From Mantamonas sphyraenae STR306 (lineage: Eukaryota > Protista > CRuMs), in assembly GCA_026936335.1 (NCBI GenBank), contig JAPMXV010000038.1, positions 62,001-126,000 on the forward strand: a stretch of DNA of 64,000 bases, in the 5' to 3' direction. The translations under genes were made by a program, and so were the position numbers. Numbering within the stretch: position 1 is the stretch's first letter; the number at the start of each line of letters is the position of its first letter. Below are positions 25,536 to 44,029 of this stretch, in pieces. Below the pieces are notes generated by a model that had not been told where the DNA came from, made no database searches, and was given only the letters and a program-made list of their open reading frames with translations.

Positions 25536-25601
25536 GGGGCAACGTGGTGGCTGTGCGAGGAGGGATGCAGGGAAACCCAAGGCAGGAAAAAAACCATCAC
25601 C

Positions 25602-26186: not shown

Positions 26187-26219
26187 AACAACACAACCGT
26201 AAAGAGCGATTGGAAACCC

Positions 26220-26727
26220 ATGGATCTCGTGTCTGTTGCTGATGACAACATTCGACAACAGTCTGCGCTGTCCATTTGTTTGAATCTTGCAGGCGCCGTC
26301 TCTTCTGTTCTGGCGCTTGTGTTTGTGCCGGGGATTGAAGGAGACGGCTTGGCGATCGCCACCGTTGTACTCTTTCTGGTCAGCGCTGCCGTTGGTATTT
26401 GTCTCAATGCATTGGCGCTGGTGGAAGTGTACACGGGCAACACCTTTGCCATGGGTGTGTCCAGCCTGTCCTTCTTTGTCGGGCTGATTTTGTGCGTTGA
26501 GGCTCGGGTGTCGCAGAACGCAGGCCTGGACCTGGAACTGACACCTGGGTTGACTGTGGATTGCTTACAGGATGTTTGTGCACACCGACTTCTGGCTTTC
26601 CACAACGATGGGACAAGTTCTGTACGGTGTGCAGATCTCCGTCGTGGTTCTCTCGTGCTGCCTCGTCGTGTGTTTCGTTTGTGTACTAGGCACAGCCTAC
26701 AATGACAGGGTGCGGATATTTACGTAA
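26220..26727 (+). CDS. Small 4-TM protein, 5S-linked family member A; intron 26492-26570
   Basis: LALVFVPGIEG motif; phase-2 GTGCGT...TTACAG intron gives exon 2 MFVHTDFWLSTTMGQVLY..., matching paralogs B and C. Confidence 0.65.
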
Positions 26728-26931
26728 CAACTGGGAATGGGGAGGTGGGGGGTGGGAAGGCGAAAGGGAGCAGGAGGGGACAGAGACGGAGCTGTGCTTT
26801 TGCGCAGTGGTGCCAACGGATGGACGTGGTTGCGAGGGATGGCAGAATCAACGCATTACGCACACGGAATACATAGCATCAGGTGCGATACTCGACGATT
26901 GGGTCAAAGAATCAAAAAAAAAAAGAGAATT

Positions 26932-27049
26932 ACCAACGTCACAGCCAATTCCCTTGAGGTCCCCCATCAAAGTACTACGGCTGCCATCTCCAGCTTAACG
27001 GTGGGGTTCGGCAGGGACCCTGTGCTTTCTGGAGTGTTTGAACGTTGGT
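26932..27049 (-). rRNA. 5S rRNA: 5S rRNA (118 nt), copy 1
   Basis: ACCAACGTT...GACGTTGGT helix I, CTCCAG/CTGGAG helix II, box A-like GTTAAGC, TAGTACT..GATGGGGGACC...GGGAA; followed by an oligo-T Pol III terminator. Confidence 0.92.
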
Positions 27050-27429
27050 TAGTTTCGATGAGAGGTGTCTGGGGTGCGGACCCGAGCCACCAGACGAGGC
27101 TTGTGTCAGCTTGCGACCACATCGGATTTCTTCAGCACTTGATTTCGCCACACAGCCATTCACTGGGACTCCCACCGGGATTGGTGTGGAGTGATAAAAG
27201 GGATTGGCACATCAGTGGGGATGGGATTTGGCTGCGTGTGGTGGTATGAGAGCACAGGTGACAATTGCGAGGGTTCATGCCAGGTTCAATGCCGGCTTCC
27301 AGCACCCAGACGTGACTTTGGGTGTGCGTGGAGCGGGTTACTCCGCATCACGTGTGACATACGAACCAGGATGTGGACAGAACCGGTGTGGTGCGGTTGA
27401 CGAGGCACAGCGATTCGAAAAAGGCACGC

Positions 27430-27916
27430 ATGGCCACGCCACGGTTCGTGGAAGGACCACTGCAAAGGGACCTTCAGCGCGCAAGCGCCATGTGCGTGTT
27501 GAAAGGAGTTGCTGGCCTGGTGGGACTGTTGGTTGTCCCTGGCGCGTGGGGCAGCGTGATGCAGATCCTCTCTGCGGCTCTGCTCGTTCTAGACGCGGGC
27601 ATCGGCTTCACGGTGTTTAAGCGTGGACTGGCAGGCACACACCCCCCTGGATGGGTAATCAATGTGCTGCTGGCCCTGCCTGTTGTCGCAATGACGTTGT
27701 ACGTGGCTGGAAGTGAGGAAAGGTAGCAGAAGTCGCCCCACACTCACATCCCATGTGCGACACAACACCAGAACGTTTCTGAGGGCGGGTGACTGGTTCT
27801 CCAGTTTCTTGGGTGCTGTGTTCTTTGTGTTGGTTGTCGTGTCTGTCCCGTTGGGGATCTACGCCTGCATCAACCTGAAGATCACCCTGGATTTCCAACG
27901 CACACGGAAAAGGTGA
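27430..27916 (+). CDS. Small 4-TM protein, 5S-linked family member B; intron 27723-27771
   Basis: KGVAGLVGLLVVPGAWG; phase-2 GT...CAG intron (49 nt, CTCAC branch) joins exon 2 TFLRAGDWFSSFLGAVFF. Confidence 0.7.
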
Positions 27917-28153
27917 CTGCAATGAACAGCATGGGTGATACGGTGTATAGAAGTGGAGAGTCGATGGGGTGTAGGGTGACGATGGAGAGTGGAAAGGCAG
28001 CACCTGCAGCGCTGGGTTTGTCGCGTCGTCACCACGATGCAATGTAGCTTCGAGCAAAGTGATGGACGAGGTGGATACACTCTTCCATGCATGCGCATGA
28101 CGATGCGGAAACAAAAAGAGGATGGTGAGGTGAAAAAGAGCAAAAAGAGAATT

Positions 28154-28271
28154 ACCAACGTCACAGCCAATTCCCTTGAGGTCCCCCATCAAAGTACTAC
28201 GGCTGCCATCTCCAGCTTAACGGTGGGGTTCGGCAGGGACCCTGTGCTTTCTGGAGTGTTTGAACGTTGGT
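28154..28271 (-). rRNA. 5S rRNA: 5S rRNA (118 nt), copy 2
   Basis: Identical to copy 1; T-runs downstream. Confidence 0.92.
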
Positions 28272-28729
28272 TAGGTTTGATGGGAGGTGTCGGGGGTGGG
28301 GACCCGAGCCACAAGACGAGGCTTGTGTCAGCTTGCGACCAGCTCGGATTTCTTCAGCACTTGATATCGCCACACAGCCATCAACAGGACACATCGACCC
28401 CCGTCACGTCCTGCAGCCACCCATATCCTTGACCACACGCGTCCGTCCAGTCTCAACCATTCCCTGTGCTGCTTACAGTGATCGCAAGTACATTTCCCTT
28501 CGAAACCTCCTCCCACGTCTCACACCCAACCCTGCCCTCCGCACATCCCACAGTCACACCTCAGCCCATACCGTACACACACCAACCCCACAACCCAGCC
28601 CCATTATCATCCCTTTATCCTCCTCCTCGACCCCATGTCCTAGCCGTTTCTCCTCGCAAGCCACTGCCCACACTCCCCCTGCCCCTCCTCCAGCTCATCT
28701 CCACCCACACACACTTCCACACCCCTCTC

Positions 28730-29050
28730 TCAATGGATGTCTTCCGACTCGTCTTCCTCCAAAACTGCGTTGATCGGCCGCACGCGAATGGGTTTCCGCA
28801 CCGTTTGACCAAACCAGTACCACCGCACAAACGCCGCCACCACAAGCACTGCCGCAAGTGCAAACAGCAGCGGCACCTCCAGAGGCCACGACAGGCCTGT
28901 GCTGTCCGCAGCCAGTGGCTCTCTATACAGCACTGCCACCACACAAAACACCACCGTGCCTCCAAAGCACATCAGCTGGCCCCACCGATCCAGCTGCCTC
29001 GCCTTTCTGCGCTCCCCTTCCATCGCTGCATCCTTCACCGGTGTCAACAT
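28730..29050 (-). CDS. Small 2-TM hypothetical protein (~106 aa), left copy
   Basis: Two hydrophobic helices and an acidic tail; ORF intact in both arms with a synonymous difference (GAC/GAT). Confidence 0.55.
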   Translation of the reverse strand: MLTPVKDAAMEGERRKARQLDRWGQLMCFGGTVVFCVVAVLYREPLAADSTGLSWPLEVPLLFALAAVLVVAAFVRWYWFGQTVRKPIRVRPINAVLEEDESEDIH

Positions 29051-29098
29051 GCCCTGTGTCTTCTCCACTCGGTGTCTCTGCAATCCCTGCGTCGATGT

Positions 29099-30373
29099 TT
29101 ACTCTGCCCCTCCCAACGCACCCAGGATGTCCACCACTGCCCCTGCCAGTCGCTCGGGACACTGCTCCTGCAGAAAGTGTCCTGCCGTGTCCACCAGCTC
29201 AATGGGTCCCTTGTTCAGCTTGGCCATGCGGTAGTGCACCTTGCCCAGGATCGGATCCCGCGTGCCCCACACCCCGCGCCACTCGCCCCTGTACGCAGTG
29301 AACCAGTCATCGGTCATTTCAAACACAGCCAACGAATCGTGTGTCGGCGTGTTGGGCACCATCTTGGCCATGGCCAACGGTGCCGCACGGTCTCGGTGTG
29401 CTCGGAACGGAAACATGTACGCACGCGTCTCTGCAGACAGAATGCGCAGCGAATGCGAGTCACCCTGCACTGCATTCAGGTTGTGCATGGGGAACAGGAA
29501 GGGACGGAACACCCACGGAGCCACGGCTGTGTGTGAGAACCGGTGGAACCATGTGTTGTGGAACTTCTTGGGCACAGACACCGCTGTGTTGGCATACACC
29601 ACTCCCTGGATCGCAACCTGCGTCTCTGCCTCCAGTCGTGCTGCCACAGCTGTCACCGTCGGTCCTCCCCAGTCCTGGCCCATGATCAGCACGGGCAACT
29701 CGCTGTCCACGCCAAGTGCCTTGACCACACTCGTCACCACACTCACGTGCAGCGCCAGACACCCGGCCATGGCATCGTTGTCTGGTTTCCCACTCAATCC
29801 ACAGCCCATCAGATCCGGCGCAATCACACGCAGTCCCTGCGCCGCCTCTAAACCCTCCAGCGCCTTGATCACCTTCCGCCACAGAAACGACCACGTCGGA
29901 TTCCCGTGGAACATCAACACCGTCGCACGCACCGGTGTGTCTGCACCCCCAATCACATGGTCAACCACATGCACAGGCAATGCCCAGTCGTCACTGTGCA
30001 CCACACAAGCACGACGACGCACAGCAAACACACTCTCCACCTCTTCCGGCAACGCTGGCACCTTGTCCAGCAACTCCACCTCGTGGGTGTGCTTCGCCAG
30101 ACTGCGCATTGCCTCTTTGTCTCCTGCACGCACGTTTGCTTCCACCCACCGTCCTCCGTCCATCGACATGGCACGCACTCCACGGGGACACACCTCTGCC
30201 ACACACTTGTTCAACTCAGCCTCATACCCTTCTTGCTGCTTGATCCCATCTGCACTCAGCCCCGCTGGCATTTGCACATAGTTCGTCACCACGTACAGCA
30301 CAACCACAAGCAACACCAGTGCGCAAAGAGCCCAACACGCAACCTGCGCTGCCAACGTGCCAACGTTCTCCAT
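29099..30373 (-). CDS. Haloalkane dehalogenase/OleB-like alpha/beta hydrolase with N-terminal TM anchor, left copy
   Basis: FHGNPTWSFLWRKVI, APDLMGCGLSGKP, GQDWGG (Asp nucleophile + Trp), WGTRDPILG, AGHFLQE; intronless. Confidence 0.85.
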   Translation of the reverse strand: MENVGTLAAQVACWALCALVLLVVVLYVVTNYVQMPAGLSADGIKQQEGYEAELNKCVAEVCPRGVRAMSMDGGRWVEANVRAGDKEAMRSLAKHTHEVELLDKVPALPEEVESVFAVRRRACVVHSDDWALPVHVVDHVIGGADTPVRATVLMFHGNPTWSFLWRKVIKALEGLEAAQGLRVIAPDLMGCGLSGKPDNDAMAGCLALHVSVVTSVVKALGVDSELPVLIMGQDWGGPTVTAVAARLEAETQVAIQGVVYANTAVSVPKKFHNTWFHRFSHTAVAPWVFRPFLFPMHNLNAVQGDSHSLRILSAETRAYMFPFRAHRDRAAPLAMAKMVPNTPTHDSLAVFEMTDDWFTAYRGEWRGVWGTRDPILGKVHYRMAKLNKGPIELVDTAGHFLQEQCPERLAGAVVDILGALGGAE

Positions 30374-30673
30374 CACGGGATGTCTTGGCACAGCCTTCGC
30401 ATCACCCAACCCATCGTCCTCGCCCTCGTCCTCCACACCCACTGTGTCTGTGCGAAAGGCGCTTTTTCACTCGTGTCACCTCCTACGGCGCCCGGGATCT
30501 TTGCGTCGGCGGGTTTTGTTGTGATTTGCGAAAGGCGCCTTGCGCCTATCGACCAAACTCAACCCTGGGCTCCTCGGTGGCACCGACACACATTGGACGC
30601 AGAGCACACCACCCACATCCGACCTTAGAACACACCAAACACACGTGCGAAGCGATCAGCACTCGGGATAGAG

Positions 30674-32611
30674 ATGCGTCGCAGTAGGAGAACTCAAGAC
30701 GGCGGGATGGAACTGGAGTCGCTGGGAGGAAGCGAAGTGAGGCGAACCAAAACACACGCATCGATGTACAGTCGCAAGGAACGGCATGGGAAGAGGACAG
30801 AGCATGGCGGGCGTGGGTATGGCCGTGCGGTGGTTGGCGGAAGGGCGACGGAGGCTTTTTTGAAGACCGGATGGAAGGAAACGGCCGCAGGACAGAAAGG
30901 TCCAGGGGGTGGAAACAGGTATGTGGAGGAAGGGATGGAGACAGAGAGCGTGAGTGGAAGCAGCAGCGAGTCGGAGGTGGAGTGTGGAGACTGTGAAACG
31001 TGCCTGGGCTTCTCTGGGGAGGAGGGAAGGTGGTGTGGGACAAAGAGCGGAAGGGACCGCGACGGAGGAGGAGGAGGGAGCGACGGCGGAGTGCACACGC
31101 TGGACATGGTGACGCTTCGGCTGCCGACGAGGACGGGAGAGGAAGGGGCACAGCGATTGCAGCAGTTGCAGATGCTGGCACAGAAGCAGTCAGAGTCAGA
31201 GTCGGAGGGTGACGTGGAGGAGGAGGGGGCGGAAGGAATGGAGACGGAGAGCTCGGGGAGCAGCAGCAGCCGAAAGAGGATGAGGAAGAAGCACAAGCAA
31301 GCAAGTGGGTTTGATGCACTGCCAGCCGCGGTGGTACAACACATCTTTTCGTATCTGGATCACAAGGACCTGGCACACGGGGTGGCAGGGACGAGCAAGC
31401 GGTTTCGGCTGTTGAGCAACAGCGACGCGGCATGGAAGGCAGCGTTTGTGCGCTTCTTTGGGTACACACCGCGGCATCCGTGTCCTGTGTACTTGAACAA
31501 GCCACTGGACCTTGCCGAAGACAGCACGAGCGAACAACGGATGGTGATGCAGAGCCTGTACGAACAATACCAGGGCAACGCACTGCACCTGCCCGACCAG
31601 GCGTATCGGCACTGCTTTGTCAAGTGCTACCTGGCCGGACTGTCGCACTGCTACGAGAAGCAACGGCGTGCGCGCTCACGTGACTCGACGCCGCAGGTGA
31701 GTGTGGAGGGCCTGTGGGAGGAACTGGGAGACGACGAGACACGATATGCCTACGCAGTGCGTGTGGCAGAGAGCGTGGCACGTCAGAAGGAGGCAAAGAA
31801 GCAGTATCGCAAAGCATACGTGGGGGCATACCTGTTTGGGGAGTTTATGCGGATCACAGAGGAGGAGTTGGAGAGTGGAGAGGAGGTGGGGGTGGAGGAG
31901 GCAAGCTACGTGGGGATGGCAGTGCAGTTTTGCCAGATGAGTGTGTACAAAGGATTGGCACTGCGCAACATGGGCTATCTGACGGGGTCGTCGTATGCGT
32001 ACGTGGAGGTGCTGAACACGTGCAAGCGTGCAAAGCGGTACCTGGGCGGCTGGGAGCCGACGCAGCTGCGGGACTTTCGAGCGACGGCGTATGTGAACCT
32101 GAGTGTGGTGTACAACGAAGGCAAGCTGTACGGGACGGCGCTGGAGTGCATTGACGCAGGGGTGCCGCTGATGCAGGAGCTGATGAAGGAGGTGGAGGTG
32201 GACGGGGAGGCGGAGGTGCTGGAGTTTGAGGACAGAGTGGTGGAGAGGCTGGAGGAGGCCGGAGAGGAGGTGCCGCAGGTGCACAGCGAGAACAGCGTGT
32301 ATGCGGCCAGACTGATGCATCTGCTGAACAACCGTGTGGATGTGCGACTGAAGCTGGGCGAACCGCTGCGCAACGTGGTGGGGGACCTGGCGTTGGTGGG
32401 CAGTGTGGGAGACTTTTACCTGTCACTGTACGACTGGGAGGTGGGACGTGTGCCGGAGCACCTGTACAACGCCATGCACGACGTGTACCTGTGTGTGCTG
32501 TGTCTGGGAGAGGCAGAGACGCGAGAGTGCGTGCGTCTGCTGAATGAGGAGCACTCGGGCTTGTCAGGCTTCTTTCATGCGCTATCGCGAGAGTGGCAGG
32601 ACGAAGAGTGA
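30674..32611 (+). CDS. F-box protein with helical (TPR-like) C-terminus, left copy (true start may be downstream)
   Basis: FDALPAAVVQHIFSYLDHKDL...TSKRFRLLSNSDAAWK F-box; ATAYVNLSVVY...ALECI TPR-like segment. Confidence 0.8.
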   Translation: MRRSRRTQDGGMELESLGGSEVRRTKTHASMYSRKERHGKRTEHGGRGYGRAVVGGRATEAFLKTGWKETAAGQKGPGGGNRYVEEGMETESVSGSSSESEVECGDCETCLGFSGEEGRWCGTKSGRDRDGGGGGSDGGVHTLDMVTLRLPTRTGEEGAQRLQQLQMLAQKQSESESEGDVEEEGAEGMETESSGSSSSRKRMRKKHKQASGFDALPAAVVQHIFSYLDHKDLAHGVAGTSKRFRLLSNSDAAWKAAFVRFFGYTPRHPCPVYLNKPLDLAEDSTSEQRMVMQSLYEQYQGNALHLPDQAYRHCFVKCYLAGLSHCYEKQRRARSRDSTPQVSVEGLWEELGDDETRYAYAVRVAESVARQKEAKKQYRKAYVGAYLFGEFMRITEEELESGEEVGVEEASYVGMAVQFCQMSVYKGLALRNMGYLTGSSYAYVEVLNTCKRAKRYLGGWEPTQLRDFRATAYVNLSVVYNEGKLYGTALECIDAGVPLMQELMKEVEVDGEAEVLEFEDRVVERLEEAGEEVPQVHSENSVYAARLMHLLNNRVDVRLKLGEPLRNVVGDLALVGSVGDFYLSLYDWEVGRVPEHLYNAMHDVYLCVLCLGEAETRECVRLLNEEHSGLSGFFHALSREWQDEE

Positions 32612-32693
32612 AGAGAGAGAGGGATGGTGGTGGTCAACAATGGTATTTAGTATTTACAGCACCCTGGGTGATTGGGTGATTGGGGGGGGGGGA

Positions 32694-33222
32694 TCAGTTC
32701 TTGCGACGGGTGGTGTGTTCAAACACAACCACCTGAAGGTAGTCGGGGTCTTCGATTTCGATGCGCCTGCTGTTGTCGCCCGGAGGTGAGTTGGGATCCA
32801 GGTTGATCTGTTTGCGGTCGCGCTTGTTCTTGAACTGCAGGCCAGACGACGTGACGACCACAGTGAAGTTGGTGGATGATGCACTGGACGACTGTCCCGT
32901 CGCAAAGTTGTAGTACGACAGGTCGCTGGTGCTTGGTACGAGTTTCTCCCTGAGGCGAGGACGAGGGGAAGCAGGGGGAAGCAGGAGAAGGGGATGGACG
33001 ATGAGCAATCTCTCCCACACTCACTCTCACTCTGCTCGTCTGTGGACAATCCCTCCCACTCATGCTTACCCGTCAAAGTACTGTTCAAAGTCTTCTCCTT
33101 CGGCCTGCAGACGTGCTCCGTAGTCTAGGTACCCGCTCACCTCCTGGTGCTTGCTGTTCTCTGTGCGGATGTAGATGATCATCTGTGTGAGGGTGGAGGA
33201 TGTCCAGCACAGGCGAGTGTGT

Positions 33223-33260
<38 letters not shown>

Positions 33261-33788
33261 ATCCCACACCGGAGCAACACTCACCGTCGTCTTGCCACTC
33301 TTGACCGAAGACTCAAAGTGTGCCAGCAGCTTCATCAGTGGCTTGTCCTCCAGGTCTTTGCCATCGGAGAGCAGTCCCACAGAGCGAGTCACTTTGGTCT
33401 TTGTCTGCCTGCTGGCTGCCTTCTTCTCGTCCCACTCGGCTCGCGAGATGCTCTCGCCACTTCCGCGGTAGCCCAGCTCTACAAGCTGTCTGCACAGCAC
33501 CTCATCTTCCAGAAACTGTCGGGTGTGATTTTGGGTGGATGGGTGGGGTGGTGATGGCAGATGGGTGGGTCAGCATGGGTCGAGTGTGCGTGGACGGGCG
33601 ACGGGAGCTGGGAGGCGGGCGAGCGGAAAGCCGTTGCGCAAAGACCCGTGCCACACGCGGGCCACACGTACGTAGAGGTCGGTAGGGGTCACCTGGGAGT
33701 CGAGATAGTCTTCGTAGGTGTCGAATTCCTGGATGTAGCTGTCGATGGTGCCTGCTTGGATCTCGAGGATGTCCTCTGTGCTGGTCAT
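32694..33788 (-). CDS. CFAP299: Cilia- and flagella-associated protein 299 (DUF4464), left copy, 3 introns
   Basis: FDTYEDYLDSQVT..DLY|FLEDE.LCRQLVELGYRG, |MIIYIR...QEVSGYLDY..RL, DLSYYN, GLQFKNKRDRKQINLDP...PGDNS.R. Confidence 0.88.
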
Positions 33789-33895
33789 CGGCGGGGGGCA
33801 GGTTGGTCGGGCATGCGCTGCGCTGCGAACACCAACACATCGCATCCCTGGCTTCCCAGTGTTCTCCTAGGCTCTCACCCCACAGTGTACAAACA

Positions 33896-34191
33896 ATGGT
33901 AGGTGTTTGGGTGTCGTGTCTGAGAGTGCGTGGCGGAAGGGAGGATTTCTCCGTCTCTTGCCACGACCCTAGAGTCGCACTTGCACACATGGCTAGGGGC
34001 TCACGCTCGGTGTTGTGGCGGCGCAGGCAAAGGGAAAGGGAAAGGCAGTGATTGTAAAGCTTGTGAGCACGGCAGGCACGGGGTTCTTCAAAACCACCAA
34101 GAAGAAGGCGAATGCGCCCAAGTTGGCGCTGAACAAGTACGATCCGGTCGTGCGCCAGCATGTGCTGTTCACAGAGGCCAAGGCCAAGTAA
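33896..34191 (+). CDS. MRPL33: Mitochondrial-type ribosomal protein bL33 (55 aa); exon 1 is only the ATG; intron 33899-34026
   Basis: M|[54 protein letters not shown]; ATG|GTAGGT...GCGCAG. Absent from the ORF track. Confidence 0.92.
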
Positions 34192-34293
34192 ATATGTATT
34201 GCAACGAGGAAGTGCATCCTGCCAAGCAGGAACATGGTGGCATCATCCACCCAGTGTGCCGCGCGTTGGAGGATTGAGCTGGGAAGGCGAGTT

Positions 34294-36442
34294 TCATTTC
34301 TTGGCGGCAACGTACACGTTGATGGTGCCATCGTCTCCAGATGTGAACATGTATGGTTTGGTGGGGTGGAAGCAGACACATCGAACCTCTGTCTCTGAGT
34401 GGTCCTTGAGGACAAGGGTGTTGAGTCCGGTGAGGAGGTCAAAGATGTACACATGACCCGTTTGGGTGGGACTAGCCACGTGGGTGCTGGTGCATGCGTC
34501 CTCCATGAGCAGTTGGTTAGACACATAGCCGTCTGCAGAGTACGAACGCACCTGTTCGAGGGCAAACTCGTCGCCTGCTTCCTCGGGCAGGGTGAGCTTG
34601 TACAGGATGAGCTCGTTAGGCTTACTCAACTCGCCATCTTCGTCCAGTGCGTGGCATCCACGCACCAGCAACAGTCGATGTTTGGTGCTGTCCAGCTTCA
34701 GGCTGCTGGCAAGCAGCGGGCTGTACACAAACTGGATGGAGACGGTGCTGAGGGTGAACACATCGTCAAATGCCTGCAAGAAGGCTTCTTGCTTGAGATC
34801 CAGGATTTTGATGGCATTGTCGGCTGCCATGGCCACCAGCCGCTGGCCGGTGCCTGGGATGAGCGTGACATACGCCGCCACGCTGGTTGTCATGTCGTAC
34901 ACCCACGAGCGTTCGCCTGTGTTGTATGCCCAGTCGTCATCCATGGGATGTTTGTACACGTAGCCGTCTTCCGAGCTGGAGATGAGGTAGTGTTTGCCGT
35001 CCAGCGTCACCGTCTGCAGGCTCAGCGCCTCCTCCGTGTGTCCGCTGAGTTCGTTGTACATGTGACCGGACACCACGTCGAAGCACTTGATGGGAGTGTT
35101 GGGCACAATGCTGTTGTCCTGTTCGTCCATGTCGTACTGCTCCCGGTTCTGACGCACTCCACACGCGTACACATACTTGCTGTTGGGTGACCACGTCACA
35201 TGATAAAACTGCTCAATGTGTTTCTCGTCCGAATCCTGCAACTCTTGCACCAACGAAAAGTCGTCCAGAGCGTAGATGCACACCTGCCCCAAAGACGAGC
35301 AGGCTGCCAGCATCCGTGCGTCTGGAGAGATGGCCATGGAGTAGATGTACCCACGCTGCCGAATGGTTTGCAACAGCGTCAATGGATGCTTCTTGCCCAT
35401 TTCCTGGATGGGTGATGGCACTTCCCCGGAGTAGCTAAAGTTGGCCGGCACCGTCTCGTCAAACGCCGACGACGAGTCCTGCAGGAAGCGATAGGACCAA
35501 GCCCACGTGTCTGGATTGGCCTGTGCCTCCTCTGCAAGCTCTTCGGCCGATGGTGCAGGTGGTGCCTTCTTGATTACATACTCCTGGCCATTCAAGAAAC
35601 GACCCCGTCCCACAACCTCTGCACTTGCCGATGACGACGATGCTGCCACTGCTGCCTCCTCCGCTTCCACCGCTGCAGTTTGGGCCATTGTTGACGCTCG
35701 CTTTGACCGCCGCGGACTCTCCTCTTCCTCCACAGCCATCGAGTCTGGAAATGCGCGCCATCGCACAGGCAAGGTGCTCTCGCAGGTGTCAGCACAACGC
35801 ATACATGGACAACAGGTGGATGCACCACGGACAGCTGAGTCACATCGACAAGGAGACGATGCAACGCGATGGATGATACATGCACAACCACCTGCAAGCA
35901 ACAAACCTGTCAGAGCCTTGGTTGGTGTTTTGGGCCCGTCATTCTCCTGGATGGACATGGAGTTGGACTCTGACGTCAGTGCACGGAGTGTAACGTAACC
36001 GGTGGAGCGCAGTGTCAGTGTTGTGTAAACGCGCATACCCCTGTTTGCAACGGAAAGCGGAAGGTCGCACCCAACACACCTTTCTTTGGCGATTCGGCCT
36101 CTTCCATGGAAGCGGCAATGGCCGCCAACAGCGCCTCTTGCTCTTCATCGTTGGCCACCGCCAGATCGGCTGAGACTGAGAGACATTGGTGCGGGTGTTA
36201 GCGAGAGTCCTCGCAGTGGTGTCGCTTGTGAAAGCGTGTGCGAACGGTGATCACAACGACAAAAGTGGACGTGAAACACCAACCCGGACAACCATGACAC
36301 CATTGGGTGTATCCATGCCCCTACACAGCACCAATGTACTGCTCAAACACATTCACGTACCTTTGCGTCTCGAGTTTCGTCTGGGAGACTTTTGGCGCGG
36401 GCTGCTTCGGGTGCCCTTCCTTGCTTTGCCACCACGCTCCAT
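34294..36442 (-). CDS. WD40-repeat protein with basic N-terminus and a ubiquitin-interacting motif; introns 36176-36360, 35970-36079, 35745-35906
   Basis: Three in-frame phase-1 introns; UIM-like DEEQEALLAAIAASMEE; WD repeats LSGHTEE..., VRCVCFHPTKPYMFTSGDDGTINVY. Confidence 0.8.
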
Positions 36443-36551
36443 GCCAAGACTGAGGTGATTTACAGGAGAAGGGAGGGAGTAAAGTCCAGAAGGTAGGCGA
36501 TGTGTTGGTGTTCCCAGCGCAGCGCATGCCCGACCAACCTGCCCCCCGCCG

Positions 36552-37646
36552 ATGACCAGCACAGAGGACATCCTCGAGATCCAAGCAGGCACCATCGACA
36601 GCTACATCCAGGAATTCGACACCTACGAAGACTATCTCGACTCCCAGGTGACCCCTACCGACCTCTACGTACGTGTGGCCCGCGTGTGGCTCGGGTCTTT
36701 GCGCAACGGCTTTCCGCTCGCCCGCCTCCCAGCTCCCGTCGCCCGTCCACGCACACTCGACCCATGCTGACCACCCAGCTGCCATCACCACCCCACCCAT
36801 CCACCCGAAATCACACCCGACAGTTTCTGGAAGATGAGGTGCTGTGCAGACAGCTTGTAGAGCTGGGCTACCGCGGAAGTGGCGAGAGCATCTCGCGAGC
36901 CGAGTGGGACGAGAAGAAGGCAGCCAGCAGGCAGACAAAGACCAAAGTGACTCGCTCTGTGGGACTGCTCTCCGATGGCAAAGACCTGGAGGACAAGCCA
37001 CTGATGAAGCTGCTGGCACACTTTGAGTCTTCGGTCAAGAGTGGCAAGACGACGGTGAGTGTTGCTCCGGTGTGGGATGGACACACACACACACACACAC
37101 ACACACTGACACACTCGCCTGTGCTGGACATCCTCCACCCTCACACAGATGATCATCTACATCCGCACAGAGAACAGCAAGCACCAGGAGGTGAGCGGGT
37201 ACCTAGACTACGGCGCACGTCTGCAGGCCGAAGGAGAGGACTTTGAACAGTACTTTGACGGGTAAGCATGAGTGGGAGGCATTGTCCACAGAGAAGCAGA
37301 GTGAGAGTGAGTGGGAGTGAGTGTGGGAGAGATTGCTCATCCTCCATCCCCTTCCCCTGCTTCCCCTGCTTCCCCTCGTCCTCGCCTCAGGGAGAAACTC
37401 GTACCAAGCACCAGCGACCTGTCGTACTACAACTTTGCGACGGGACAGTCGTCCAGTGCATCATCCACCAACTTCACTGTGGTCGTCACGTCGTCTGGCC
37501 TGCAGTTCAAGAACAAGCGCGACCGCAAACAGATCAACCTGGATCCCAACTCACCTCCGGGCGACAACAGCAGGCGCATCGAAATCGAAGACCCCGACTA
37601 CCTTCAGGTGGTTGTGTTTGAACACACCACCCGTCGCAAGAACTGA
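36552..37646 (+). CDS. CFAP299: CFAP299, right copy, 3 introns
   Basis: Same exons as the left copy. Confidence 0.88.
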
Positions 37647-37733
37647 TCCCCCCCCAATCACCCAATCACCCAATCACCCAGTGTGCTGTAAATACTAAAT
37701 ACCATTGTTGACCACCACCATCCCTCTCTCTCT

Positions 37734-39671
37734 TCACTCTTCGTCCTGCCACTCTCGCGATAGCGCATGAAAGAAGCCGGACAAGCCCGAGTGCTCCTCA
37801 TTCAGCAGACGCACGCACTCTCGCGTCTCTGCCTCTCCCAGACACAGCACACACAGGTACACGTCGTGCATGGCGTTGTACAGGTGCTCCGGCACACGTC
37901 CCACCTCCCAGTCGTACAGTGACAGGTAAAAGTCTCCCACACTGCCCACCAACGCCAGGTCCCCCACCACGTTGCGCAGCGGTTCGCCCAGCTTCAGTCG
38001 CACATCCACACGGTTGTTCAGCAGATGCATCAGTCTGGCCGCATACACGCTGTTCTCGCTGTGCACCTGCGGCACCTCCTCTCCGGCCTCCTCCAGCCTC
38101 TCCACCACTCTGTCCTCAAACTCCAGCACCTCCGCCTCCCCGTCCACCTCCACCTCCTTCATCAGCTCCTGCATCAGCGGCACCCCTGCGTCAATGCACT
38201 CCAGCGCCGTCCCGTACAACTTGCCTTCGTTGTACACCACACTCAGGTTCACATACGCCGTCGCTCGAAAGTCCCGCAGCTGCGTCGGTTCCCAGCCGCC
38301 CAGGTACCGCTTTGCACGCTTGCACGTGTTCAGCACCTCCACGTACGCATACGACGACCCCGTCAGATAGCCCATGTTGCGCAGTGCCAATCCTTTGTAC
38401 ACACTCATCTGGCAAAACTGCACTGCCATCCCCACGTAGCTTGCCTCCTCCACCCCCACCTCCTCTCCACTCTCCAACTCCTCCTCTGTGATCCGCATAA
38501 ACTCCCCAAACAGGTATGCCCCCACGTATGCTTTGCGATACTGCTTCTTTGCCTCCTTCTGACGTGCCACGCTCTCTGCCACACGCACTGCGTAGGCATA
38601 TCGTGTCTCGTCGTCTCCCAGTTCCTCCCACAGGCCCTCCACACTCACCTGCGGCGTCGAGTCACGTGAACGCGCACGCCGTTGCTTCTCGTAGCAGTGC
38701 GACAGTCCGGCCAGGTAGCACTTGACAAAGCAGTGCCGATACGCCTGGTCGGGCAGGTGCAGTGCGTTGCCCTGGTATTGTTCGTACAGGCTCTGCATCA
38801 CCATCCGTTGTTCGCTCGTGCTGTCTTCAGCAAGGTCCAGTGGCTTGTTCAAGTACACAGGACACGGATGCCGCGGTGTGTACCCAAAGAAGCGCACAAA
38901 CGCTGCCTTCCATGCCGCGTCGCTGTTGCTCAACAGCCGAAACCGCTTGCTCGTCCCTGCCACCCCGTGTGCCAGGTCCTTGTGATCCAGATACGAAAAG
39001 ATGTGTTGCACCACCGCGGCAGGAAGTGCATCAAACCCACTTGCTTGCTTGTGCTTCCTCCTCATCCTCTTTCGGCTGCTGCTGCTCCCCGAGCTCTCCG
39101 TCTCCATTCCTTCCGCCCCCTCCTCCTCCACGTCACCCTCCGACTCTGACTCTGACTGCTTCTGTGCCAGCATCTGCAACTGCTGCAATCGCTGTGCCCC
39201 TTCCTCTCCCGTCCTCGTCGGCAGCCGAAGCGTCACCATGTCCAGCGTGTGCACTCCGCCGTCGCTCCCTCCTCCTCCTCCGTCCCGGTCCCTTCCGCTC
39301 TTTGTCCCACACCACCTTCCCTCCTCCCCAGAGAAGCCCAGACACGTTTCACAGTCTCCACACTCCACCTCCGACTCGCTGCTGCTTCCACTCACGCTCT
39401 CTGTCTCCATCCCTTCCTCCACATGCCTGTTTCCACCCCCTGGACCTTTCTGTCCTGCGGCCGTTTCCTTCCATCCGGTCTTCAAAAAAGCCTCCGTCGC
39501 CCTTCCGCCAACCACCGCACGGCCATACCCACGCCCGCCATGCTCTGTCCTCTTCCCATGCCGTTCCTTGCGACTGTACATCGATGCGTGTGTTTTGGTT
39601 CGTCTCACTTCGCTTCCTCCCAGCGACTCCAGTTCCATCCCGCCGTCTTGAGTTCTCCTACTGCGACGCAT
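37734..39671 (-). CDS. F-box protein, right copy
   Basis: 645 aa; two amino-acid differences noticed versus the left copy (NRY/NRH, RKKH/RRKH). Confidence 0.8.
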   Translation of the reverse strand: MRRSRRTQDGGMELESLGGSEVRRTKTHASMYSRKERHGKRTEHGGRGYGRAVVGGRATEAFLKTGWKETAAGQKGPGGGNRHVEEGMETESVSGSSSESEVECGDCETCLGFSGEEGRWCGTKSGRDRDGGGGGSDGGVHTLDMVTLRLPTRTGEEGAQRLQQLQMLAQKQSESESEGDVEEEGAEGMETESSGSSSSRKRMRRKHKQASGFDALPAAVVQHIFSYLDHKDLAHGVAGTSKRFRLLSNSDAAWKAAFVRFFGYTPRHPCPVYLNKPLDLAEDSTSEQRMVMQSLYEQYQGNALHLPDQAYRHCFVKCYLAGLSHCYEKQRRARSRDSTPQVSVEGLWEELGDDETRYAYAVRVAESVARQKEAKKQYRKAYVGAYLFGEFMRITEEELESGEEVGVEEASYVGMAVQFCQMSVYKGLALRNMGYLTGSSYAYVEVLNTCKRAKRYLGGWEPTQLRDFRATAYVNLSVVYNEGKLYGTALECIDAGVPLMQELMKEVEVDGEAEVLEFEDRVVERLEEAGEEVPQVHSENSVYAARLMHLLNNRVDVRLKLGEPLRNVVGDLALVGSVGDFYLSLYDWEVGRVPEHLYNAMHDVYLCVLCLGEAETRECVRLLNEEHSGLSGFFHALSREWQDEE

Positions 39672-39971
39672 CTCTATCCCGAGTGCTGATCGCTTCGCAC
39701 GTGTGTTTGGTGTGTTCTAAGGTCGGATGTGGGTGGTGTGCTCTGCGTCCAATGTGTGTCGGTGCCACCGAGGAGCCCAGGGTTGAGTTTGGTCGATCGG
39801 CGCAAGGCGCCTTTCGCAAATCACAACAAAACCCGCCGACGCAAAGATCCCGGGCGCCGTAGGAGGTGACACGAGTGAAAAAGCGCCTTTCGCACAGACA
39901 CAGGGGGTGTGGAGGACGAGGGCGAGGACGATGGGTTGGGTGATGCGAAGGCTGTGCCAAGACATCCCGTG

Positions 39972-41246
39972 ATGGAGAACGTTGGCACGTTGGCAGCGCA
40001 GGTTGCGTGTTGGGCTCTTTGCGCACTGGTGTTGCTTGTGGTTGTGCTGTACGTGGTGACGAACTATGTGCAAATGCCAGCGGGGCTGAGTGCAGATGGG
40101 ATCAAGCAGCAAGAAGGGTATGAGGCTGAGTTGAACAAGTGTGTGGCAGAGGTGTGTCCCCGTGGAGTGCGTGCCATGTCGATGGACGGAGGACGGTGGG
40201 TGGAAGCAAACGTGCGTGCAGGAGACAAAGAGGCAATGCGCAGTCTGGCGAAGCACACCCACGAGGTGGAGTTGCTGGACAAGGTGCCAGCGTTGCCGGA
40301 AGAGGTGGAGAGTGTGTTTGCTGTGCGTCGTCGTGCTTGTGTGGTGCACAGTGACGACTGGGCATTGCCTGTGCATGTGGTTGACCATGTGATTGGGGGT
40401 GCAGACACACCGGTGCGTGCGACGGTGTTGATGTTCCACGGGAATCCGACGTGGTCGTTTCTGTGGCGGAAGGTGATCAAGGCGCTGGAGGGTTTAGAGG
40501 CGGCGCAGGGACTGCGTGTGATTGCGCCGGATCTGATGGGCTGTGGATTGAGTGGGAAACCAGACAACGATGCCATGGCCGGGTGTCTGGCGCTGCACGT
40601 GAGTGTGGTGACGAGTGTGGTCAAGGCACTTGGCGTGGACAGCGAGTTGCCCGTGCTGATCATGGGCCAGGACTGGGGAGGACCGACGGTGACAGCTGTG
40701 GCAGCACGACTGGAGGCAGAGACGCAGGTTGCGATCCAGGGAGTGGTGTATGCCAACACAGCGGTGTCTGTGCCCAAGAAGTTCCACAACACATGGTTCC
40801 ACCGGTTCTCACACACAGCCGTGGCTCCGTGGGTGTTCCGTCCCTTCCTGTTCCCCATGCACAACCTGAATGCAGTGCAGGGTGACTCGCATTCGCTGCG
40901 CATTCTGTCTGCAGAGACGCGTGCGTACATGTTTCCGTTCCGAGCACACCGAGACCGTGCGGCACCGTTGGCCATGGCCAAGATGGTGCCCAACACGCCG
41001 ACACACGATTCGTTGGCTGTGTTTGAAATGACCGATGACTGGTTCACTGCGTACAGGGGCGAGTGGCGCGGGGTGTGGGGCACGCGGGATCCGATCCTGG
41101 GCAAGGTGCACTACCGCATGGCCAAGCTGAACAAGGGACCCATTGAGCTGGTGGACACGGCAGGACACTTTCTGCAGGAGCAGTGTCCCGAGCGACTGGC
41201 AGGGGCAGTGGTGGACATCCTGGGTGCGTTGGGAGGGGCAGAGTAA
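39972..41246 (+). CDS. Haloalkane dehalogenase/OleB-like hydrolase, right copy
   Basis: Protein identical to the left copy. Confidence 0.85.
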   Translation: MENVGTLAAQVACWALCALVLLVVVLYVVTNYVQMPAGLSADGIKQQEGYEAELNKCVAEVCPRGVRAMSMDGGRWVEANVRAGDKEAMRSLAKHTHEVELLDKVPALPEEVESVFAVRRRACVVHSDDWALPVHVVDHVIGGADTPVRATVLMFHGNPTWSFLWRKVIKALEGLEAAQGLRVIAPDLMGCGLSGKPDNDAMAGCLALHVSVVTSVVKALGVDSELPVLIMGQDWGGPTVTAVAARLEAETQVAIQGVVYANTAVSVPKKFHNTWFHRFSHTAVAPWVFRPFLFPMHNLNAVQGDSHSLRILSAETRAYMFPFRAHRDRAAPLAMAKMVPNTPTHDSLAVFEMTDDWFTAYRGEWRGVWGTRDPILGKVHYRMAKLNKGPIELVDTAGHFLQEQCPERLAGAVVDILGALGGAE

Positions 41247-41294
41247 ACATCGACGCAGGGATTGCAGAGACACCGAGTGGAGAAGACACAGGGC

Positions 41295-41615
41295 ATGTTG
41301 ACACCGGTGAAGGATGCAGCGATGGAAGGGGAGCGCAGAAAGGCGAGGCAGCTGGATCGGTGGGGCCAGCTGATGTGCTTTGGAGGCACGGTGGTGTTTT
41401 GTGTGGTGGCAGTGCTGTATAGAGAGCCACTGGCTGCGGACAGCACAGGCCTGTCGTGGCCTCTGGAGGTGCCGCTGCTGTTTGCACTTGCGGCAGTGCT
41501 TGTGGTGGCGGCGTTTGTGCGGTGGTACTGGTTTGGTCAAACGGTGCGGAAACCCATTCGCGTGCGGCCGATCAACGCAGTTTTGGAGGAAGACGAGTCG
41601 GAAGATATCCATTGA
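41295..41615 (+). CDS. Small 2-TM hypothetical protein, right copy
   Basis: Same as 28730-29050. Confidence 0.55.
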   Translation: MLTPVKDAAMEGERRKARQLDRWGQLMCFGGTVVFCVVAVLYREPLAADSTGLSWPLEVPLLFALAAVLVVAAFVRWYWFGQTVRKPIRVRPINAVLEEDESEDIH

Positions 41616-42074
41616 GGGAGGGGTGTGGAAGTGTGTGTGGGTGGAGATGAGCTGGAGGAGGGGCAGGGGGAGTGTGGGGAGTGGCTTGCGAGGAGAAACG
41701 GCTAGGACATGGGGTCGAGGAGGAGGATAAAGGGATGGATGGGGCTGGGTTGTGGGGTTGGTGTGTGTACGGTATGGGCTGAGGTGTGACTGTGGGATGT
41801 GGGGAGGGCAGGGTTGGGAGTGGGACGTGGGAGGAGGTTTCGGAGAAGGGAAATGTACTTGCGATCACTGTAAGCAGCACAGGGAATGGTTGAGACTGGA
41901 CGGACGCGTTTGGTCAAGGAGATGGGTGGTTTGCAGGACGTGACGGGGGTCGATGTGTCCTGCAGATGGCTGTGTGGCGATATCAAGTGCTGAAGAAATC
42001 CGAGCTGGTCGCAAGCTGACACACGCTCGTCTTGTGGCTCGGGTCCGCACCCCAGACACTTCCCATCAAACCTA

Positions 42075-42192
42075 ACCAACGTTCAAACACTCCAGAAAGC
42101 ACAGGGTCCCTGCCGAACCCCACCGTTAAGCTGGAGATGGCAGCCGTAGTACTTTGATGGGGGACCTCAAGGGAATTGGCTGTGACGTTGGT
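42075..42192 (+). rRNA. 5S rRNA: 5S rRNA (118 nt), copy 3
   Basis: Same 118-nt sequence, followed by AATTCTCTTTTTGCTCTTTTT. Confidence 0.92.
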
Positions 42193-42429
42193 AATTCTCT
42201 TTTTGCTCTTTTTCACCTCACCATCCTCTTTTTGTTTCCGCATCGTCATGCGCATGCATGGAAGAGTGTATCCACCTCGTCCATCACTTTGCTCGAAGCT
42301 ACATTGCATCGTGGTGACGACGCGACAAACCCAAAGCTGCAGGTGCTGCCTTTCCACTCTCCATCGTCACCCTACACCCCATCGACTCTCCACTTGTATA
42401 CACAGTATCACCCATGCTGTTCATTGTAG

Positions 42430-42917
42430 TCACCTTTTCCGTGTGCGTTGGAAATCCAGGGTGATCTTCAGGTTGATGCAGGCGTAGATCCCCAACGGGA
42501 CAGACACGACAACCAACACAAAGAACACACCACCCAAGAAACTGGAGAACCAGTCACCCGCCCTCAGAAACGTTCTGGTGTCGTGTCGCACATGGGATGT
42601 GAGTTGTGGGGCGACTCCTGCTACCTTTCCTCACTTCCAGCCACGTACAACGTCATTGCGACAACAGGCAGGGCCAGCAGCACATTGATTACCCACCCAG
42701 GGGGGTGTGTACCTGCCAGTCCACGTTTAAACACCGTGAAGCCGATGCCCGCGTCTAGAACGAGCAGAGCCGCAGAGAGGATCTGCATCACGCTGCCCCA
42801 CGCGCCAGGGACAACCAACAGTCCCACCAGGCCAGCAACTCCTTTCAACACGCACATGGCGCTTGCGCGCTGAAGGTCCCTTTGCAGTGGTCCTTCCACG
42901 AACCGTGGCGTGGTCAT
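42430..42917 (-). CDS. Small 4-TM protein, family member B' (mirror of 27430-27916), one intron
   Basis: Near-identical to member B. Confidence 0.7.
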
Positions 42918-43299
42918 GCGTGCCTTTTTCGAATTGCTGTGCCTCGTCAACCGCACCACACCGGTTCTGTCCACATCCTGGTTCGTATGTCACTCGTGAT
43001 GCGGAGGAATGCGCTCCACGCACACCCAAAGTCACGTCTGGGTGCTGGAAGCCGGCATTGAACCTGGCATGAACCCTCGCAATTGTCACCTGTGCTCTCA
43101 TACCACCACACACGGAGCCAAATCCCATCCCCACTGATGTGCCAATCCCTTTTATCACTCCACACCAATCCCGGTGGGAGTCCCAGTGAATGGCTGTGTG
43201 GCGAAATCAAACGCCAAAGAAATCCGAGCTGGTCGCAAGCTGACACAAGCCTTGTCTTGTGGCCCGGGTCCGCACCCCAGACACTTCCCATCAAAACTA

Positions 43300-43417
43300 A
43301 CCAACGTTCAAACACTCCAGAAAGCACAGGGTCCCTGCCGAACCCCACCGTTAAGCTGGAGATGGCAGCCGTAGTACTTTGATGGGGGACCTCAAGGGAA
43401 TTGGCTGTGACGTTGGT
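43300..43417 (+). rRNA. 5S rRNA: 5S rRNA (118 nt), copy 4
   Basis: Same 118-nt sequence, followed by ATTCTCTTTTTTGTTTT. Confidence 0.92.
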
Positions 43418-43423
43418 ATTCTC

Positions 43424-43434
43424 TTTTTTGTTTT
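43424..43434 (+). terminator. Oligo-T RNA polymerase III terminator of 5S copy 4 (equivalents follow all four copies)
   Basis: T6 and T4 runs just after the 5S 3' end. Confidence 0.75.
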
Positions 43435-43559
43435 GCTTCTTTGACCCAATCGTTGAGTATGGCACCTGATGCTATGTATTCCGTGTGCGTAATGTGTTGA
43501 TTATGCCATCCCTCGCAACCACGTCCATCCGTTGGCACCACTGCACAGAAGCAGCAGAT

Positions 43560-44029
43560 CTATCGCCAATCGACGCGGTCAAGCATCATCAACACCGGCA
43601 GAGCAGACAGAAAATTCACAACCACGGAGGAAACAAAGAAGAATCCCCCAACGACAGTCTTGAACCACAATCCGGACCCCAGATACAGTCTGTGCAGTGG
43701 GAGAGTCAGTACGGCGACTTTGCCAAGCCGCCCTTCTCCTCGCCCACTCACTGCACCAAGTTGACCAGAGGAACGGCAGCCAGTATCATGGGGGTCGTCA
43801 CGTGGAACCGGTCACCCGGTTGCGACACTTGAAGGAGCAGATTGCCAATCACTGCGTCGAGAAGGAGCACCATCACGGCATTCAGCTGCGGCGGGTTCCC
43901 CCACACGCCAGGCACAAAGACCAATCCCACCACACCTGCAATTCCCTTCATCACATACGTGGCACCTCCCATCAGGTCCGTACAGCCTGCTTGCGATCCA
44001 GCATGCTGGATTCCGCGTCGAGTTTGCAT
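43560..44029 (-). CDS. Small 4-TM protein, 5S-linked family member C; intron 43690-43751
   Basis: MKGIAGVVGLVFVPGVWG; phase-2 GTGAGT...ACTGAC...CAG intron; exon 2 LYLGSGLWFKTVVGGFFF. Confidence 0.7.

Follow-up and report, generated by a model that had tools for sequence, protein, structure and literature searches.

In linked (L-type) arrangements of 5S rRNA genes, the 5S gene shares a repeat unit with 35S rDNA, histone, snRNA or spliced-leader RNA genes. The ampliconic palindromes of primate Y chromosomes provide a second point of comparison, with gene-bearing arms that are kept alike by arm-to-arm gene conversion. Here we describe a locus in the flagellate Mantamonas sphyraenae at which four of the nine genomic 5S rRNA genes alternate with genes for an orphan four-helix membrane protein. 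As in L-type arrangements, 5S and another gene lie in one short repeated unit of which the 5S part is uniform. However, there are just two units per arm of a palindrome and no long array, the partner is an orphan protein gene with four transmembrane (4-TM) helices, and participation is partial (4 of 9 5S genes and 4 of 6 copies of the family genes); moreover, concert is limited to the 5S gene and 105 nt, with the remainder of the unit beyond DNA alignment. The palindrome is like those of the Y chromosome in having near-identical inverted arms, a unique spacer and mirror-image genes, although it is small (7 kb arms), its identity declines toward the outer ends, and each of these ends has a 5S gene as its cap, immediately beyond which lies a non-identical paralogue (A or C).

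5S rRNA genes and the repeated unit

All positions refer to the window, which is the whole stretch of 64,000 nucleotides of contig C38 that was analysed. It contains four 5S genes that pass the RF00001 gathering threshold (38 bits) and cover model positions 1–120:

26931–27049, minus strand: 5S gene 1, left arm, outer (RF00001, 86.7 bits)
28153–28271, minus strand: 5S gene 2, left arm, inner (RF00001, 86.7 bits)
42075–42193, plus strand: 5S gene 3, right arm, inner, mirror of gene 2 (RF00001, 86.7 bits)
43300–43418, plus strand: 5S gene 4, right arm, outer, mirror of gene 1 (RF00001, 86.7 bits)

A preliminary description of this DNA reported that the four 5S genes are identical and that each is convergent with a small gene in a repeat unit of ~1.2 kb, and both points hold. 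The genes are tail-to-tail, with gaps between the stop codon and the 5S end of 203 nt (A), 236 nt (B and B′) and 141 nt (C), and the units have a start-to-start spacing of 1222–1225 nt (~1.22 kb), with two units head-to-tail in each palindrome arm. The same description counted four pairs; there are indeed four adjacencies of a 5S gene with a small gene, but B′ mirrors B and the distinct 5S-linked paralogues are three (A, B and C). No SL RNA, snRNA or tRNA was found inside the unit (Rfam at E up to 1; ARAGORN).

Nine 5S copies are present in the genome assembly, all with one identical 119-nt string, and read depth suggests a copy number of ~11–12. The other five are on contig C5, where their neighbours are other genes; no small 4-TM gene was found in any of the five neighbourhoods, and similarity between the C5 and C38 copies extends over the 5S gene and ~20 nt only. 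The 5S genes of M. sphyraenae are dispersed among unrelated genes. The second locus, on C5 (region 151–193 kb), is likewise an inverted duplication, so that both 5S loci lie in inverted duplications; eight of the nine 5S genes are within inverted segmental duplications in which identity decays outwards.

The palindrome

The four units at the C38 locus are arranged about a palindrome:

26795–33849, no strand assigned: left arm (inverted-repeat pairs I1–I15)
36491–43553, no strand assigned: right arm (inverted-repeat pairs, mirror of the left arm)

The arms are ~7 kb long; identity between them is 94% at the outer end and climbs inwards to 100%, with the inner 4 kb being 100% identical and differences of 2–6% near the 5S genes. 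The palindrome is internal to the contig, with a unique centre of 2.6 kb and unique outer flanks, and the depth of short-read DNA contigs on the arms is ~1.4–1.9 times that of the flank (the read-based results, namely X3 RNA contigs and DNA contig depth, cover 25600–28500 of the window). B/B′ and four interior genes are duplicated in mirror image. B and B′ are ~98% identical, with five differences in 408 coding nt (three synonymous, A2T, and an Ala to Gly change), and the lower divergence of coding sequence than of flanks (1.2% vs 2.8%) is a trend toward purifying selection that is not significant (p = 0.12). Genes A and C lie immediately beyond the outer ends of the arms; no mirrored similarity was found outside these genes, and tblastx there gave low-complexity noise only.

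Similarity between units is restricted to 5S and an upstream block

Immediately upstream of each 5S gene is a conserved block, for example:

27050–27160, minus strand: upstream block of 5S gene 1 (~105 nt conserved; aligned among the four copies)
28272–28381, minus strand: block upstream of 5S gene 2 (from the four-copy alignment)

The 105-nt block is 90–95% alike across the four copies and is present nowhere else in the genome. DNA similarity between units is confined to the 5S gene and this block (~247 nt) and drops sharply on both sides; in DNA alignments A aligns with neither B nor C, and B and C align over 120 nt only (67.5%). To judge from these alignments, concerted evolution appears to be confined to the 5S gene and ~105 nt upstream of it, the whole unit not being included. 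The upstream blocks diverge most between mirror partners (6–10%) and their site patterns fit no single tree; together, the mosaic patterns and the differences between mirror partners fit exchange among the four copies.

Gene models and expression

The four membrane-protein genes are organized as follows:

26220–26491, plus strand: gene A exon 1 (ORF from the ATG at 26220; 90 codons and 2 nt; end set by a spliced X3 RNA contig)
26492–26570, plus strand: gene A intron (79 nt, GTGCGT..AG, phase 2; joint 26491>26571, X3 record 18)
26571–26727, plus strand: gene A exon 2 (fourth helix; FVHTDFW...G motif; stop TAA at 26725–26727; X3 RNA contig)
27430–27698, plus strand: gene B exon 1 (89 codons and 2 nt; ORF and spliced X3 contig, record 21)
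27699–27771, plus strand: gene B intron (73 nt, GTACGT..AG, phase 2; joint 27698>27772 in X3)
27772–27916, plus strand: gene B exon 2 (stop TGA at 27914–27916; X3 record 21 spans 27772–28001)
42430–42917, minus strand: gene B′, mirror copy of B (exon 1, 42917–42649; exon 2, 42574–42430)
43752–44029, minus strand: gene C exon 1 (92 codons and 2 nt; BLASTP to B exon 1)
43690–43751, minus strand: gene C predicted intron (62 nt, GTGAGT..AG, phase 2; from sequence)
43560–43689, minus strand: gene C exon 2 (stop TAG at 43562–43560; aligns with B exon 2, z 5.6)

Genes A and B are transcribed, spliced protein-coding genes. Phase-2 introns had been proposed previously but with no coordinates, and the X3 RNA joints place those of A and B, each with GT..AG borders. 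The 3′ UTR of gene B extends at least to 28001 (X3 record 21). For gene C, the predicted intron is the sole GT..AG pair found for which the exon 2 frame is both hydrophobic and homologous. The 3′ end of this gene is seen in RNA, with its last codons and 3′ UTR forming a loose end in an X3 contig. The predicted proteins are 142 aa (A), 137 aa (B) and, using the predicted intron, 135 aa (C), and every gene has three hydrophobic peaks in exon 1 and one in exon 2.

Two types of gene model were rejected. Donors at 26510 (A) and 27723 (B), drawn to match the protein sizes in the preliminary description, are ruled out by the RNA joints, with the true donors being 18 nt (A) and 24 nt (B) upstream. The second is an unspliced 161-aa ORF of A, whose tail is not hydrophobic and in whose frame the polymorphisms hit first codon positions.

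An orphan family with members that are not linked to 5S

All family searches, alignments and statistics were exon-wise, with each exon treated separately. In exon 1, BLASTP matches B with C (E 6e-11, 53% identity over 40 aa) and A with C (E 4e-6); A and B have no BLASTP match, but give z 5.2 against shuffles. All three genes encode the motifs L.[FV]VPG..G and [FY][LV]....W.....G..[FL][FY], as reported earlier, and the homology on which the earlier grouping depended is significant. A, B and C are genuine, very diverged paralogues.

Two more family members, D and E, are present as a tandem pair on contig C14 (region 72200–73650). Their similarity to A is significant, with collinear matches in exon 1 (E 2e-5) and in exon 2 (E 5e-8). 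They are separated by an 88-nt spacer, with an ATG-to-ATG distance of 751 nt vs ~1210 nt for A–B, and their predicted intron is in phase 0, displaced by one nucleotide from that of A, B and C, which is in phase 2. There is no 5S gene within 6 kb around D and E, nor anywhere on contig C14. The family tally is five distinct paralogues in six gene copies, four of which are 5S-linked. A one-to-one pairing does not extend to the genome as a whole, given that five of nine 5S genes have no family neighbour and that D and E have no 5S gene; the preliminary description itself held that relatives elsewhere lacking a 5S association would argue against its proposal, and D and E are two such relatives. That they form a 5S-free tandem suggests that the 5S pairing represents one ancestral adjacency spread by segmental duplication and not a functional module.

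Among A, B and C, the closest pair is B–C, though it is A and C that hold mirror positions, and A is at least as similar to D/E as it is to B and C, being nearest to D/E in exon 2. We note that a simple history of mirror twins predicts neither of these relationships.

We found no relatives in a word search of 5.8 billion proteins with the exon-1 profiles A3 and A7, no matches at E up to 0.001 for profile A3 with HMMER against 1.84 billion representatives, and no relatives in a metagenome scan with the exon-2 profile A8. An ESM Atlas feature search with exon 1 of B and of D returned generic membrane clusters only, with low recognition. Among all exons, the sole Pfam match is to the YrhK-like family (PF14145), and is below its cut-off of 26.1 bits for both D exon 2 (18.4 bits, E 0.002) and E exon 2 (14 bits, E 0.046) in exon-wise searches in which the intron splits the putative domain; no match to Pfam was found for the exons of A, B and C. 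When PF14145 was searched genome-wide, D exon 2 was the only family exon that matched, again sub-threshold (E 0.08). YrhK-like proteins are likewise small and consist of two-helix hairpins, and it is the second helix of the model that D and E exon 2 match, but with D/E scoring below the cut-off and A, B and C having no match, we regard this relationship as a lead only. By these exon-wise searches the family appears to be lineage-restricted, with no detectable relatives elsewhere.

Selection and age

The preliminary description presented the family as fast-diverging and diversifying, and the data do not bear this out. Values of dN/dS range from 0.16 to 0.77 overall (D–E 0.16–0.27, B–C 0.58–0.77), although dS exceeds 1 for nearly every distinct pair and synonymous saturation limits the power of the test. 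The five read variants in A exon 2 (26616, 26628, 26634, 26688 and 26718) are all at third codon positions and all synonymous. The combination of saturated dS, dN/dS below 1 and synonymous-only polymorphism fits old age rather than fast diversification.

Origin of the locus

The locus probably arose by an old tandem co-duplication of a unit containing a membrane gene and a 5S gene, recopied by the palindrome. The starting point would be a segment of ~1.2 kb with one four-helix membrane gene transcribed by Pol II and a convergent 5S gene transcribed by Pol III, which would have undergone an ancient tandem duplication in the M. sphyraenae lineage. Selection and gene conversion may then have held the 5S genes identical (all nine copies have one 119-nt sequence), and at this locus exchange among copies may have kept the upstream blocks alike, while the protein genes, introns and spacers would have diverged beyond synonymous saturation with function retained. 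A later inverted duplication would have doubled the inner unit to give B and B′, with the arms subsequently kept 94–100% alike and the outermost genes, A and C, lying beyond the homogenised arms. The succession of these steps and the part played by gene conversion are inferred, the latter from patterns only.

An alternative is that the membrane-gene tandem came first, and that each spacer subsequently received a copy of the 5S gene with its 105-nt block, by insertion or conversion, as a consequence of 5S mobility. This would fit the tight tandem of D and E without 5S, the sharp edges of the ~247 nt of similarity between units, and the scattering of 5S genes among unrelated genes. It seems unlikely, however, as it calls for two or more insertions that match in relative position and orientation, no target-site duplications or features of mobile elements were seen, and old co-duplication with conversion limited to the 5S gene and block yields equally sharp edges. 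We also think it rather improbable that the few 5S genes are recombination anchors, with repeated exchange at the 5S gene and block having driven birth and loss in the orphan membrane family at this locus; if true, the local turnover of gene families in this compact, deep-branching eukaryotic genome would be organized by 5S genes.

The model of the preliminary description casts the 5S repeat as a recombination vehicle, one that continually amplifies and shuffles a variant membrane family while 5S is homogenised. Much of its basis stands, including the shared 1.2 kb unit, the identical 5S genes, the similar blocks and the strongly diverged protein genes; unequal exchange could plausibly act on the direct repeats of 247 nt, which recur every 1.22 kb, and the upstream blocks look mosaic. 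Its amplification and shuffling of variants do not, and we consider the model quite improbable: each arm has just two units, family members without 5S and 5S genes without family members both exist, the signs of selection are as noted above, no chimeric paralogues were detected, and every distinct duplication is old. The vehicle is also unneeded, because a single ancestral adjacency carried along by duplication suffices. Finally, although long-read assemblers can produce inverted duplications such as false palindromes, and the inner 4 kb of the arms show 100% identity, it is extremely improbable that the duplicated units are an assembly artefact with one real arm, since the palindrome is inside a contig with a unique centre and unique flanks, the arms differ near the 5S genes and have elevated depth, and A and C are distinct genes that are both present in the reads.

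Under the co-duplication reading, the striking 5S and membrane-gene pattern would be an old co-duplicated unit, neither a pairing rule nor a generator of diversity. The locus may offer a small and clean case of concerted evolution restricted to 5S and 105 nt upstream while adjacent protein genes diverge, and the presence of each of the genome's two 5S loci within an inverted duplication is a useful observation in itself. The RNA-checked models of genes A and B describe an expressed, apparently lineage-restricted four-helix family in a deep-branching eukaryote.

Organization of the 5S rRNA genes and their convergent neighbors

Rfam identifies four 5S rRNA genes in the window, and all four are the same 119-nt string.

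26931–27049, minus strand: 5S rRNA gene 1 (Rfam, 86.7 bits)
28153–28271, minus strand: 5S rRNA gene 2 (Rfam, 86.7 bits)
42075–42193, plus strand: 5S rRNA gene 3 (Rfam, 86.7 bits)
43300–43418, plus strand: 5S rRNA gene 4 (Rfam, 86.7 bits)

Each is convergent with one small two-exon gene (A, 26220–26727; B, 27430–27916; B′, 42430–42917; C, 43560–44029), with 203 nt (A), 236 nt (B and B′) or 141 nt (C) between the stop codon and the 5S 3′ end, and the units are spaced by 1222–1225 nt. The tail-to-tail order and the ~1.2 kb repeat unit of the preliminary description are thus both borne out. The pairs are nonetheless not all independent, because B and B′ lie in a palindrome with arms at 26795–33849 and 36491–43553, whose identity is 100% along the innermost 4 kb and drops to 98% near B and to 94% at the outer margin. 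B′ mirrors B, from which it differs at five of 408 coding nucleotides (three synonymous, A2T, and one Ala to Gly change), and there are therefore four 5S/gene adjacencies but three distinct pairs. The arm depth in short-read contigs is ~1.4–1.9 times that of the unique flank, showing that two arm copies really exist. A and C flank the palindrome in mirrored positions, with stop codons 68 nt and 7 nt, respectively, from the arm ends, and no mirrored sequence was found beyond them.

Two further observations concern the 5S units. The depth of the short-read contigs at 26920–27051 and 28142–28273 (468 versus 39 in sequencing run X1, 561 versus 50 in run X2) suggests ~11–12 5S copies versus nine assembled, such that the 5S repertoire is very small and unassembled copies are few at most. 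In addition, at 26875–26917, the 3′ UTR common to A and C extends to ~55 nt from the 5S 3′ end, which brings the ends of the mRNAs almost up against the Pol III terminator; on the mRNA strand the 5S terminator T-run is an A-run.

Gene models and expression

The M. sphyraenae genome is diploid (25.06 Mb, 78 primary contigs, GC 59.19%), and the genome project included RNA-seq and Illumina DNA (PMC10492846). This stretch is covered by four runs from a single study, one of which (X3, labelled 'DNA?') acts like poly(A) RNA, in that its contigs represent genes only, contain GT..AG joints, and skip the 5S genes and spacers. The introns of A (26492–26570) and B (27699–27771) are spliced out in X3 contigs, and both are GT..AG, phase 2 as proposed, and use the expected acceptor. 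The models first drawn, which were fitted to the previously described protein sizes, were discarded, as the true RNA donors are 18 nt (A) and 24 nt (B) upstream; the products are 142 aa and 137 aa. C would encode 135 aa given a predicted GTGAGT..AG intron (43751–43690), and its 3′ end is present in an X3 contig, in which the final codons continue into the 3′ UTR shared with A.

In the spliced frame, five read variants in A exon 2 (26616, 26628, 26634, 26688, and 26718) each fall at a third codon position and leave the amino acid unchanged, which supports both that frame and purifying selection; in an unspliced 161-aa open reading frame, which we rejected, the same five would fall on first codon positions. 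In every paralogue exon 1 shows three hydrophobic peaks and exon 2 a single one, from which we predict a four-helix layout, and the family appears to be an expressed, small integral membrane protein.

Upstream of A on the same strand is a 4HBT-type thioesterase gene (25602–26186; PF13279, E 4e-22) whose stop codon is 34 nt before the A ATG, and the A 5′ UTR must therefore overlap its 3′ end. The read contigs also vary in and beyond A.

26616, 26628; 26658–26874; loose ends at 26822: haplotype-like variation in read contigs

Synonymous variants in the A region are present in RNA contigs and absent from DNA contigs, the DNA contigs at the A 3′ end come in two versions at half depth each, and a second version of the C 3′ end is seen in three runs. 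All of these most likely represent the two haplotypes of the diploid.

The gene family and its association with 5S genes genome-wide

The motifs previously noted are found in A, B, and C, and the three are significantly alignable paralogues. BLASTP of exon 1 matches B with C (E 6e-11, 53% over 40 aa) and A with C (4e-6), with no match between A and B; relative to 2000 shuffles the exon 1 z scores are 14.4 (B-C), 7.0 (A-C), and 5.2 (A-B), and that for B-C in exon 2 is 5.6. An exon 1 profile of A, B, and C matches only the four window genes in the genome. Weak collinear matches from A exon 1 and the exon 2 profile were found on contig C14, at a pair of genes designated D and E.

G000:C14:72234–73591 (L014:2234–3591), minus strand: two tandem two-exon genes, D and E

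D (153 aa) and E (146 aa) have the 3+1 helix layout of the window genes, are 88 nt apart, and share 56% identity in exon 1 and 77% in exon 2; their intron is predicted to be phase 0, displaced by one nucleotide relative to the phase-2 site in the window genes. A and D match significantly and collinearly in exon 2 (E 5e-8, shuffle z 11.1, motif FV.TD[FY]WL.T..G) and in exon 1 (E 2e-5, shuffle z 6.5), and there is no direct exon 1 match of B or C to D or E. On these comparisons A is the bridge between the B/C and D/E groups.

The genome contains nine 5S genes, the other five being on contig C5, and these have only the gene and ~20 nt in common with the window copies. Their neighbors are large unrelated ORFs, with no small 4-TM genes beside them. 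Conversely, there is no 5S or other Rfam family within the 6-kb region surrounding D and E, and no 5S gene on the whole C14 contig. The proposed one-to-one pairing thus fails in both directions: five of the nine 5S genes are unpaired, and family members occur elsewhere without a 5S gene, the latter being an outcome that the preliminary description had named as refuting it. Four of the C5 genes are themselves within an inverted duplication.

G000:C5:151033–159334 and 184847–193137 (loci L015–L020): inverted duplication with 5S genes

Its arms are 8.3 kb, 99.2% alike, and separated by a 25.5 kb spacer, with mirrored similarity dropping to 82% and 77.5% farther out. Two convergent 5S genes lie in each arm, and inverted duplications therefore hold eight of the nine genomic 5S genes.

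Exon-wise searches, which are weaker than searches with the joined spliced protein, revealed no relatives among 5.8 billion proteins (word search), 1.84 billion proteins (HMMER), or in Pfam, Atlas, and JGI metagenomes. The YrhK-like model PF14145 matches exon 2 of D and E through its second helix, at 18.4 and 14 bits (below the cut-off of 26.1), and this is the sole lead on relatives.

Conserved and diverged segments

Similarity between tandem units is confined to 247 nt at 95%, consisting of the 5S gene, a few nucleotides downstream, and ~105 nt upstream.

27050–27160, 28272–28381, 41966–42074, 43190–43299: ~105-nt 5S-upstream blocks, 90–95% alike among the four copies

The block is absent elsewhere in the genome, including at the C5 copies, and matches no Rfam family. 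Between mirror partners the blocks are the most divergent part (10.3% and 6.0%), compared with 1.2% for the B coding sequence and 0% for the 5S genes. With copies numbered left to right, the variable sites conflict, supporting {1,4}{2,3} at two sites and {1,2}{3,4} at one, a faint hint that exchange may have occurred among all four blocks.

The A gene region has no DNA alignment to B or C, and that between B and C (67.5%) is limited to 120 coding nucleotides. Nei-Gojobori dS exceeds 1 for nearly all distinct paralogue pairs (only D-E exon 2 falls lower, at 0.49), indicating that the duplications are old; the 5S gene and upstream block have evolved in concert since then. The family had been described as fast-diverging, but dN/dS is 0.16–0.27 for D-E and 0.58–0.77 for B-C and is nowhere above 1, with no sign of acceleration or of diversifying change.

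Origin of the arrangement

Sharing of a repeat unit between 5S and other repeated genes is well known (PMC3692318), and compared with these the M. sphyraenae case is limited in size and only partial, and its partner gene is unusual. The simplest account is that a single ancestral adjacency of one family gene and one 5S gene was copied by tandem duplication and later through the palindrome; selection and conversion would have kept the 5S gene and upstream block unchanged, with the protein genes drifting under constraint. This does not explain why A and C occupy mirror positions yet the closest pair is B and C, with A nearest D and E in exon 2. Alternatively, a tandem gene array resembling D-E may have existed first, with copies of the 5S gene plus block inserted later into its spacers. 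The earlier suggestion that the 5S repeat is a vehicle for amplifying and shuffling a variant family might hold as a mechanism of unequal exchange, but nothing positively supports it: each arm has only two units, the duplications are old, and neither chimeras nor an excess of amino-acid change is seen. We conclude that the arrangement of 5S and membrane-protein genes is real and that its origin is ordinary.
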